Shown: positions 52,688 through 55,432, counted from the first letter of the whole stretch. The stretch: 63,644 nucleotides of DNA, filler included, from Olpidium bornovanus S191 (GCA_017911155.1; 27 parts of 27 records of this genome joined end to end with filler, not necessarily neighbours in it); one strand, 5' to 3'. Notes: generated from the letters alone by a model not told the origin. A program made the numbers and translations.

Positions 52688-53888
52688 CGCTGGCACGGAC
52701 GGTTGGTGCAGACAATTTGCCAGACTGCGGAAAAATCCTGACGTGAGCGTCGTGAGGAGGTTGAAGCCTGCTGAGTTTTCAGCGACGGTTCTGGATGACA
52801 TTTTACGGCTTTAACGGTGCGCATTCCGCCCGTTGATCGACCATACGAAAAGCAGCTTTTGGTCAACTATTCCTCTTCCAGGCTATGAAATTCAGCATGC
52901 CTTCACGTTGTGACTGCCCATCGGCGGGCCAAACCACAACATTGTGTGTGTCAGTACGGATGGCGCAAACGTTTGATGATCACTATTTATGGTTAGCGAG
53001 ATCCCGGTACTGCGGCCCCTGGACCAATCGTTGTAATGGATTATCGACAGTTCTTTTTGCACGCCCATTGACTATCGTGCATTGGACCGACGCACTTGTG
53101 TCCGGCTCGAATGCTCGGGTCATCCACGGTAATAAACATTCTCCGTTGGACGGGTCGAAGTCACAATAGAGCTTATGGCACCCAAAATTCCCCCAAACCA
53201 AAATTCGGTGTTGCGGCCTTTTTTCGATGTGTTCAGTGTTCAGTGCGGGAGGGTTTTTTTGCTGCTCTGCTGCGTGACCTGTCTGGGCCTCAATTTGATC
53301 TCCGTCCTGCACCAGCGGCGCGCCTCACCCAAAGTCCTCCACGGCGTCTCGGCAAACCATGAGAAATGCGCATTACGTGCAGTCAGGGTGAATGCCTATG
53401 GTCATCGCGCAGGGGCGAGGGAGAGGCACCGAACATCAGGGCTGCTCAAATTTCAGCTTTCAACAGCAGAATTTGGCANNNNNNNNNNNNNNNNNNNNNN
53501 NNNNNNNNNNNNNNNNNNNNNNTTAATTAATTAANNNNNNNNNNNNNNNNNNNNNNNNNNNNNNNNNNNNNNNNNNNNCCCCCCCCCTCTCCCTTTCCGT
53601 CCGTCAGTCCCTGTTCCGCCCTTCGCGAATTCCCCCAGGGGGCCCCGCGTTGCGCATCCTATTTCGTTTCATCTTTTTTGTTTCGTTTCCTTTTCCGTTT
53701 TCCCTCTCTCTCACTCTCTCTCCCTTTCCCCCGCCTCCCGACAACCCCCCCCCCCACCATCCTCACCCATTACTTCCCGTTCACACCTCTCGCTCTGCCT
53801 TTCGGCAGATCAGCTAAGAGAACCCTGAAAAAAAGCCCCCCCCCCACCTTGTCGACCTGCGTATAAACCTACCCTAGGGAAAGCCGTT

Positions 53889-54971
53889 ATGCTTGAGTGC
53901 TGCAGGTTGCTGCTGCTAGCAGTCGCGGCGCTGGCCGCGATCGGCGGCGCCGTTGGTTCAGAAGAGGCGGCCGTGTCGGTGAGCATCAGGTTCTCGCCGG
54001 ATGCGCCCGGGCCGCCAATCCTCGTCGCGAAACGCTCCGTCGGGTTCGAGCGGGCAGCAGAGCTGCCCGAGCGGGCCGATCGCCGAGCGCTGCAGAAACG
54101 CAGGGCGGTCGACGGCGCCGGCCGGTCCCGGCTCGAGAGGCGCCAGGAGTCGGCCCCGACGTTCATCGGCGAGCCAAGGCTGGACGTCCTGCTCGGCAAG
54201 CGGGACGAAAAGCCCGCCGCCTCCAGCCGCCTGGAGAAACGCCAGGAGTCAGGCCCGACGCTCATCGGCGAGCCCCGGCTGCACGTTCTGCTCGGCAAGC
54301 GGGACGTAGAGCCCGCCGCTTCCAGCCGCCTGGAGAAGCGCCAGGAGTCGACCCCGGCGCTCATCGGCGAGCCCCGGCTGCACGTTCTGCTCGGGAAGCG
54401 GGACGAAGAGCCCGCCGCTTCCAGCCGCCTGGAGAAGCGCCAGGAGTTGACGCCGACGCTCATCGGCGAGCCAAGGCTGCACGTCTTGCTCGGCAAGCGG
54501 GACGAAAAGCCCGCCGCCTTCAGCCGCCTGGAGAAACGCCAGGAGTCGACCCCGACGCTTATCGGCGAGCCCCGGCTGCACGTTCTGCTCGGCAAGCGGG
54601 ACGAAGAGCCCGCCGCTTCCAGCCGCCTGGAGAAGCGCCAGGAGTCGACGCCGACGCTCATCGGCGAACCCAGAATGCACGTTTTGCTCGGCAAGCGGGA
54701 CGGGTCCGGGCCCCGGCTGCGGAAGCGGAACTCTGCCGCCAAGTCGCCCAAGAAGGCTCCCGCTACCGCTTCTGCCCAGAATGAGGGCGGCATCCTGTCG
54801 CCCATCCAGTTTAGGCCTTACGCGCTGGAGCTATCCATGCCCTTCAGCGTGGCCGGCCTGGCCCTGACTTTCACCGTCTTCTTCCTCATGCTCCGCGGGT
54901 CAGCGGCGATCGACGACCGAGCCCGCGCCGCGATGCAGAAGTCAGCCATCCAAATGGACTGGAAAGCATAA
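53889..54971 (+). CDS. Kex2-processed repeat peptide precursor (prohormone-like): signal peptide, 6 core peptides, 5 spacers, C-terminal TM helix
   Basis: Signal MLECCRLLLLAVAALAAIGGAVG; units (K/R)R-QExxPxxIGEPRxxVLLG-KR-DxxPAAxSRLE; hydrophobic FSVAGLALTFTVFFLML near the C-terminus; uninterrupted 360-codon ORF. Confidence 0.9.
   Translation: MLECCRLLLLAVAALAAIGGAVGSEEAAVSVSIRFSPDAPGPPILVAKRSVGFERAAELPERADRRALQKRRAVDGAGRSRLERRQESAPTFIGEPRLDVLLGKRDEKPAASSRLEKRQESGPTLIGEPRLHVLLGKRDVEPAASSRLEKRQESTPALIGEPRLHVLLGKRDEEPAASSRLEKRQELTPTLIGEPRLHVLLGKRDEKPAAFSRLEKRQESTPTLIGEPRLHVLLGKRDEEPAASSRLEKRQESTPTLIGEPRMHVLLGKRDGSGPRLRKRNSAAKSPKKAPATASAQNEGGILSPIQFRPYALELSMPFSVAGLALTFTVFFLMLRGSAAIDDRARAAMQKSAIQMDWKA
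54144..54698 (+). repeat. 99-nt coding tandem repeat, 6 cores
   Basis: Gln codons of the cores at 54144, 54243, 54342, 54441, 54540 and 54639 (exact 99-nt period). Confidence 0.97.
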
Positions 54972-55432
54972 ACATTTTTTTCCAGTCCAGCCCCTTCCCC
55001 CTTCCTTCCTTCCATCACCTGCCATCAGGCAAAACCGAATTTCGCCATTAACGGAATCAAGGAATCGTGATAGAAAAAAGCCCCCGTGCTCCCCCATCAA
55101 ACTGTCGAATCATCACAATTTTTTGTTTGTATACCATCATTTTTCAATATAATGGGGCTGAACGCACTGCCGGGGAACGGCGCCGGGCTTCTGAAATAAT
55201 TTTCCTGACAACATGAAATTTTCTGAACGCACTGCGGCCAGGGTTGGCCAGAGTTGGTCGGTTACAGGTGGGGCCTGCCGTCACCCCCTGCGCTCGCACT
55301 GGTGCACACTGCCACAGCTACTCCTACAGCGCNNNNNNNNNNNNNNNNNNNNNNNNNNNNNNNNNNNNNNNNNNNNTTAATTAATTAANNNNNNNNNNNN
55401 NNNNNNNNNNNNNNNNNNNNNNNNNNNNNNNN

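Follow-up and report, generated by a model that had tools for sequence, protein, structure and literature searches.

The locus examined here raises the question of whether a zoosporic fungus makes a neuropeptide-like precursor. It lies at 53889-54971 (+) of the window, by which we mean the whole 63,644-nucleotide (nt) stretch of joined records from Olpidium bornovanus S191 that was analysed. A sequence-only reading had placed there a prohormone with a signal peptide and six cores released at dibasic sites. The open reading frame (ORF) of 360 amino acids (aa), the predicted signal peptide and the six cores were recovered, the cores matching letter for letter. Beyond that reading, we found a transmembrane helix followed by a 25-aa tail, five acidic spacers, a degenerate unit ending in AKR, and an origin in a metagenomic contig. 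With somewhat better than even confidence, we take the locus to be a gene without introns that is probably transcribed, belongs most likely to Olpidium bornovanus and would encode a type I membrane-anchored polyprotein releasing peptides by dibasic cleavage.

Architecture of the predicted precursor

The piece 53579-55332 is one complete contig of 1,754 nt (JAEFCI010009332.1 of GCA_017911155.1) that carries a single gene, and the 360-aa frame is its sole long ORF with a coding signature, with G+C of 0.70/0.51/0.86 at codon positions 1/2/3. The ORF and its repeat clearly exceed chance, given the third-position G+C (GC3), a relative from another sample (P0002) that retains the reading frame, and the low ratio of non-synonymous to synonymous differences (pN/pS, 0.09) in the C-terminal half of the cores. 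A non-coding repeat with a chance ORF was ruled out by GC3, the in-frame relative and the excess of synonymous changes. The features of the gene are as follows.

53835-55135 (+), smallest extent spanned by contigs from sequencing runs of guessed RNA kind; order as in the DNA, no joints
53889-53957 (+), signal peptide, aa 1-23, predicted cut after A-V-G; rule-based, helix 2-21 in AlphaFold2
53958-54143 (+), pro-region, aa 24-85, including the first RLERR site; modelled as disordered
54128-54702 (+), tandem array of 99-nt (33-aa) units; Tandem Repeats Finder: 5.8 copies, 89% matches, no indels
54144-54197 (+), core 1, aa 86-103
54243-54296 (+), core 2, aa 119-136
54342-54395 (+), core 3, aa 152-169
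54441-54494 (+), core 4, aa 185-202
54540-54593 (+), core 5, aa 218-235
54639-54692 (+), core 6, aa 251-268
54714-54728 (+), last basic site RLRKR, aa 276-280; a cut there would release the membrane stub
54729-54782 (+), Ser/Ala/Pro/Lys-rich linker, aa 281-298; length varies among relatives
54783-54836 (+), conserved juxtamembrane motif GG-I-L-SPIQFRP-x-A-L-x-L-S, aa 299-316
54837-54893 (+), transmembrane helix, aa 317-335; Kyte-Doolittle (KD) hydropathy 2.0 over 19 residues
54894-54971 (+), cytoplasmic tail, aa 336-360 (RGSAAIDD...), and stop codon

The predicted signal peptide combines R6, a hydrophobic core (KD 2.23, aa 4-22) and A-V-G before S24, and is strongly conserved in P0002. Directly behind it the pro-region begins with a degenerate first unit ending in ILVAKR (KR = aa 48-49), a site that reads ILVAKR|SVG in both proteins, and further basic pairs follow at aa 65-66 and 70-72. 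Within the array the order is LE[KR]R, an 18-aa core, KR and an 11-aa acidic spacer, so each 33-aa unit bears two basic sites and two predicted products. Every core has RLE[RK]R directly before it and KR directly after it. The core consensus is QESTPTLIGEPRLHVLLG, with no Tyr, Trp or Cys, and 6/6 cores begin with Gln after RR or KR and end in Gly followed by Lys-Arg, just as the sequence-only reading had described. The five spacers are DEEPAASSRLE and variants of it. The protein carries 17 [KR]R pairs, against 7.3 expected from its composition, when the overlapping KRR at aa 70-72 is counted (16 without overlaps). Residues after each repeat site are Q-E or D-E/D-V/D-G, and no X-Ala or X-Pro dipeptide of the Ste13 type follows the Kex2-type sites at any repeat site, which suggests that Gln would be the mature N-terminus.

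The array also shows a 297-nt higher-order period, described both as weaker than the 99-nt one and as scoring above it. Units 2, 3 and 5 group together, and units 1 and 6 each have unit 4 as their nearest neighbour, a pattern of similarity that suggests block duplication or gene conversion.

The membrane module was overlooked by the sequence-only reading. A hydrophobic stretch of 19 residues with KD 2.0 is present both here and in P0002. Behind it stands a tail of Arg and 24 further polar residues; these 25 polar residues rule out a glycosylphosphatidylinositol anchor. The AlphaFold2 model contains only two helices, 2-21 and 319-359, with a predicted local distance difference test (pLDDT) score below 50 between them; with a mean pLDDT of 38.8 it is of low confidence and was used for these two helices only. 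The hydrophobic stretch, the polar tail and the two-helix model together argue for type I membrane topology with the lumenal part disordered, not for a soluble prohormone. Pfam gave nothing above noise for the window protein or for any relative or hit, and a search of PDB sequences with a profile of the stub gave no match. The anchor could hold the precursor in the membrane plane of a membrane-bound convertase, the conserved tail could bear a sorting signal, and the stub could itself be a functional product; these three roles are not mutually exclusive.

In the mechanism that we favour, the signal peptide would lead the precursor into the endoplasmic reticulum, leaving the whole stretch up to the membrane helix lumenal and disordered. 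A convertase of the Kex2 type would then cleave it behind 14-16 [KR]R pairs in the late Golgi, with Leu at P4 at all of the repeat sites, and a Kex1-type carboxypeptidase would trim the basic residues. The expected products are six 18-residue peptides, five acidic 11-residue spacers, fragments of the pro-region and a membrane stub of about 80 residues. The exposed N-terminal Gln would probably cyclise to pyroglutamate, and the C-terminus of the peptides would most likely be a free Gly and not an amide. In this form the commonest core has a calculated monoisotopic mass of 1942.05 Da, against 1884.05 Da for the pGlu form amidated after loss of Gly, and the spacers come to about 1202.5 Da. The ORF, the repeat, the sites, the membrane helix and the pattern of conservation are observed; cleavage, pyroglutamate formation, secretion and any signalling role are what we infer.

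Relatives and conservation

Word-indexed searches of 5.8 billion proteins, queried with the full-length sequence, with its C-terminal region and with a profile of four sequences, returned P0002 only, plus P0006 when it was part of the query. An exhaustive profile search of 1.84 billion representatives added P0003 and P0006, both without repeats (E = 2.7e-13 and 8.7e-7), and the true relatives total three over these two collections, all of them on short, unlabelled contigs. No second copy from the same assembly appeared in those protein searches, and none of 457 pattern matches in a scan of JGI metagenomes was confirmed. Neighbours in the ESM Atlas all scored below 0.9 and are leads only. The relatives are as follows.

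P0002, 278 aa, Logan contig, 3 repeat units, 52% identity over the aligned part
P0003, 136 aa, ENA contig, no repeats; has a signal peptide, a single [KR]R|Q site, a linker and the membrane module
P0006, 200 aa, Logan contig, no repeats; has the same four elements as P0003

P0002 shares with the window protein the signal peptide, the first KR site, the final RLRKR site and the membrane module. The four proteins (P0001, P0002, P0003 and P0006) follow one pattern, in which a signal peptide precedes a [KR]R|Q/N site and a linker, and the C-terminal module reads GG[IV]LSPIQ[FI]RP..L..SMPF, membrane helix and [RH][GA]S[AT]A[IV] tail. Both S-P-I-Q-x-R-P and S-M-P-F are invariant in 4/4 members, the tail motif is kept in 4/4, and so is a [KR]R|Q site. 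In the alignment, the counterpart of the last basic site (RLRKR, aa 276-280) is RLRKR|Q for P0002 and HLVKR|Q for P0003. Conservation in P0002 is highest over the juxtamembrane and membrane stretch, with 74% identity vs 52% overall. By their sequences, these SPIQFRP membrane-stub proteins form a new, unannotated family of four members. The stub of about 80 residues behind a basic site appears to be its ancestral, family-defining part, since P0003 and P0006 share the stub and the [KR]R|Q site without the repeats, and the peptide array would be a lineage-specific expansion of the pro-region, with six units here and three in P0002. In P0003 (aa 1-27) and P0006 (aa 1-29) the predicted signal peptide ends in A-x-A|Q-P, and the mature N-terminus of these two proteins could likewise be Gln.

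Other hits were set aside. P0004, P0005 and P0007 are unrelated multidomain proteins matched via repeats or low complexity. P0008 carries a 36-aa repeat resembling the core, but its surroundings are the Tra genes of a conjugative element from a bacterium, where a 261-aa ORF of such repeats (L005 9980-10765; RQEKS...GEEPRVASLLGGRR) stands among TraL, TraE, TraK, TrbI and TraC; the resemblance was judged to be chance.

How much the invariance of Gln and Gly says depends on the age of the units. Units 1-5 are identical at 64-71 of 75 nt over site, core and KR, and unit 6 at 62-69 of 75, and 12/18 core positions are invariant among the six units. For two named core positions, the chance that both belong to the invariant set is about 43% (12/18 x 11/17). 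By itself, the invariance of Gln and Gly within the six units is uninformative, because the units are recent duplicates with most core positions unchanged. Across two species Gln follows the cut in 9/9 units (3/3 in P0002), and the terminal residue of the core is Gly in 8/9 (6/6 here, 2/3 in P0002). The remaining P0002 core ends Ala-Lys-Arg with its PR-V-N-VLL motif intact, and the degenerate first unit ends in AKR in both species. Both signatures are invariant in the six units of this protein, which are copies of one another; between species Gln is kept and Gly is not strictly so.

Other comparisons separate the regions of the unit. When the six units are compared, the C-terminal half of the core (EPR-L-H-VLLG) has a pN/pS of 0.09 and the LE[KR]R site one of 0.10, against 0.58 for the N-terminal half and 0.67 for the spacer. 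Counted as minimal mutational events, this gives 7 synonymous and 2 non-synonymous changes vs 4 and 8 (one-sided Fisher p = 0.056), a contrast that hints at constraint without being strong. Strains differ at two places inside the array, by V140E in a spacer and by a synonymous substitution in core 6, which agrees with this pattern. All six unit boundaries of P0002 keep [KR]R and Leu at P4, and between the two proteins the spacers and the N-terminal halves of the cores diverge while the sites and Gln stay. By sequence comparison, this is a fast-evolving protein with few fixed points, namely the sites, Gln, PR-x-x-VLL and the stub, and the conserved business end of the peptide would be its C-terminal half, PR-[LIVM]-x-VLL-[GA]. 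Such fixed points are what is expected of a Kex2/Kex1-type precursor, and the proposal of a polyprotein cut at dibasic sites fits both the architecture and the boundaries kept in P0002.

Comparison with known precursors

The closest known parallel is the class of fungal KEX2-processed repeat proteins (KEPs), which likewise have a signal peptide and tandem, near-identical cores flanked by KR or RR (PMC6339444, PMC7329392, PMC9769878). As in 77 catalogued KEPs, two types of fragment, core and spacer, are repeated here. KEPs were found throughout fungi, with 178 in 14 Chytridiomycota strains (PMC7329392; PMC6339444), and the class is known from Chytridiomycota, Blastocladiomycota and Zoopagomycota. 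The window protein differs in its conserved C-terminal transmembrane anchor and cytoplasmic tail, and it has no sequence relative among the named KEPs; Olpidium is in neither survey. As for the operational definition of a KEP, the protein has a signal peptide (by rules, the AlphaFold2 helix 2-21 and conservation in P0002), and in-silico cleavage at KR/RR yields at least four fragments with a repeated motif. It likely works like a KEP while departing from the definition in one respect, the membrane helix.

The N-terminal half of the proposed double blocking has a precedent. The KR|Q cores of KEPs from Coprinopsis cinerea yield pyro-Q peptides that were detected by mass spectrometry (MS), and this fungus has a putative glutaminyl cyclase, while pyroglutamate also forms spontaneously in Pichia (PMC9769878). 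By analogy, an N-terminal pyroglutamate on the six peptides is plausible, and this part of the double signature is not new, as pyro-Q KEP peptides are already described in Coprinopsis.

Other precursors resemble the window protein in part. Saccharomyces MF(alpha)1 also has a signal peptide plus a pro-region and tandem peptide copies freed by Kex2 and Kex1; its alpha-factor precursor is not membrane-anchored, unlike the window protein, which also has no known pheromone-receptor context and had no match to Pfam MF_alpha or MF_alpha_N at E <= 10. Animal pro-TRH precursors contain repeated Lys-Arg-Gln-His-Pro-Gly-Lys/Arg-Arg units and need PAM and dense-core granules. The likeness lies in the repeated units with Gln behind one basic pair and Gly before the next, the pattern picked up by the sequence-only reading; here, in contrast, PAM reportedly does not occur in the kingdom, P0002 does not keep Gly throughout, the cores have 18 residues and there is a membrane anchor. 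Ustilago maydis Rep1 and Candida albicans Ece1 are single secretory precursors as well, cut at KR into many extracellular peptides (in part PMC6339444), but their peptides are longer or non-identical, and they have neither a membrane anchor nor sequence similarity to the window protein. The proGATI of Chlamydomonas (Cre03.g204500) is a precursor with basic cleavage sites from a flagellated unicell, whose product is a gamete chemotactic modulator (PMC6919629, PMC9351486). It differs in its size of 91 kDa, in its folded domains and in having one amidation site at the C-terminus rather than a tandem array; MS demonstrated the amidation, and the alga possesses PAM. Ribosomally synthesised and post-translationally modified peptides of the ustiloxin type (dikaritins) have a short core with a cross-linkable Tyr and a DUF3328/UstYa gene close to that of the precursor, whereas the cores here have 18 aa and no Tyr; the 1,754-nt contig carries this gene alone.

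Competing explanations, source organism and surroundings

Several observations weigh against a KEX2-type, membrane-tethered peptide precursor. The anchor is atypical for KEPs, whose operational definition demands a soluble protein with no transmembrane helix (TMHMM filter, PMC6339444); by that same filter one KEP pipeline drops proteins with a membrane helix, and no precedent is catalogued (PMC6339444). The selection statistics are built on few, non-independent changes, and the overall interspecies pN/pS of 0.79 indicates nearly free evolution over much of the sequence. The conserved half of the core sits at P3-P9 of the downstream cleavage site, and its constraint could partly reflect protease recognition and not bioactivity. 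The runs that contain the gene are only guessed to be RNA.

One competing explanation takes the stub, as a small type I membrane protein, to be the functional product, released by one dibasic cut, with the peptides as a largely dispensable pro-region or a sorting or chaperoning leader. The stub alone is common to all four family members, two of which lack repeats, the last basic site aligns in three of them, and conservation peaks in the juxtamembrane and membrane stretch. A disposable leader is hard to reconcile with six units whose flanking sites are both strictly kept and with the constraint on the C-terminal half of the core, and PR-x-x-VLL is retained although the number of units differs between species; we regard this explanation as unlikely. 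The type I topology would also suit a surface protein, uncleaved or partly shed, with a repetitive disordered ectodomain of mucin, sensor or adhesin type, or a source of wall-bound peptides like Rep1. Language-model neighbours include Mid2-, Msb2- and mucin-type proteins, within the low scores given above, but Pfam shows no match to Mid2, Msb2 or another family, the repeat units are not Ser/Thr-rich, and paired basic sites with Leu at P4 stand on either side of every unit and are kept across species. This makes a surface protein rather improbable.

The explanation closest to the sequence-only reading is a neuropeptide-style prohormone giving six doubly blocked 17-mers (pGlu ... Leu-NH2) as a zoospore pheromone or chemoattractant, which would need Kex2, Kex1, glutaminyl cyclase and a PAM-like amidating enzyme. 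Its appeal lies in Gln after the cut and Gly before Lys-Arg in all six units, and in their frequency over two species; PAM and amidated chemotactic peptides do exist in a ciliated alga, as that reading had rightly noted for Chlamydomonas (PMC6919629). A 2019 review of PAM reports the enzyme missing throughout fungi, chytrids included (PMC6529398), although its statement predates the Olpidium genome, and our literature search gave no paper linking Olpidium with PAM. Against it stand also the P0002 core that ends Ala-Lys-Arg while the rest of its motif is unchanged, the AKR end of the degenerate unit in both species, the small residue at P3, which is explicable without amidation, and the recent duplication that deprives invariance of its weight. 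C-terminal amidation is unlikely, since PAM is reported missing in fungi, Gly is not strictly kept and a small P3 residue needs no special cause. Of the doubly blocked products, the pyroglutamate end is then the plausible part and the amide end is not. We consider this neuropeptide-style prohormone highly improbable, and a doubly blocked 17-mer secreted as a zoospore or gamete signal from a membrane-tethered precursor still less probable. The animal-style amidation and the neuropeptide analogy in a fungus are unsupported; if amidation were true, the fungal kingdom would gain its first amidated peptide signal, and the statement that PAM is missing throughout fungi would be overturned.

The membrane-tethered KEX2-type precursor, which we continue to prefer, would have implications of its own. 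Olpidium stands at the flagellated-to-terrestrial transition of fungi and is a widespread root parasite of crops, and a highly repeated, species-variable secreted peptide would be a candidate zoospore or gamete signal or a host-directed peptide; our literature search found no peptide signal for any zoosporic fungus. Secretome pipelines that discard membrane proteins can miss tethered peptide precursors of this kind. In addition, the conserved stub defines a small protein family that has so far been left unannotated.

The flagellated-fungus framing depends on the source of the contig. Zoospores of Olpidium bornovanus were washed from cucumber roots and were non-axenic, and the assembly is a tetranucleotide bin of 29 Mb kept from a raw assembly of 187 Mb (16%), although the binning by the assembly authors was conservative and included a similarity filter (PMC7865070). 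The assignment of the gene to Olpidium bornovanus, on which the flagellated-fungus label of the sequence-only reading depends, is only probable, given a non-axenic sample, a composition-based bin and a single-gene contig. Were the contig from another eukaryote on the cucumber roots, the framing would fall. The 1,754-nt contig has no marker linkage and the contigs of all three relatives are unlabelled, which would suit such an origin. On the other side, of the words sampled from the unique 3' part 98% occur in a 2012 run of organism A, which has the gene at word depth 746-1027 and probably represents the source sample. Runs from at least four studies, all labelled organism B, contain near-identical copies; this organism has many large RNA-seq projects and fits, by our guess, a host plant carrying a common root parasite. 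The upstream flank (53579-53860) is a C/T-rich low-complexity tract with GC skew -0.63, which we take to resemble the C/T-rich promoter tracts of fungal genes. On balance, an origin outside Olpidium seems to us unlikely.

Several of the organism B runs were guessed to be RNA, and these come from at least two other studies. Their contigs extend at minimum over 53835-55135, X2 records covering 53835-54219 and 54620-55135, and no joints relative to the DNA were found in any of four runs. The gene is likely transcribed, with the run kind "RNA" being a guess, and would be intronless because these contigs are collinear with the DNA.

Some minor observations concern the rest of the piece. A 331-aa antisense ORF (53810-54805, -) and a 118-aa antisense gene call of the public annotation (L001 232-588, -) overlap the 360-aa gene; these and other overlapping ORFs were rejected as by-products of the G+C-rich repeat, GC3 favouring the + frame. 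Rfam and tRNA scans of the piece gave no match. Within the upstream flank, (CT)n repeats occupy 53704-53722 and runs of C lie close to 53745 and 53838, and contigs of low-depth runs break near the second C run (~53838). TATAAA lies at 53862-53867, 22 nt 5' of the ATG, and contigs of the guessed-RNA runs begin further upstream. The ENA contig with P0003 ends in an Illumina adapter (L003 about 770-808), an untrimmed read-through in a public assembly. At the 3' end of the contig, 55153-55332 acts like a dispersed repeat, as several contigs in three runs match it at 90-95% (13 differences, one 1-nt gap) and their flanks then diverge.

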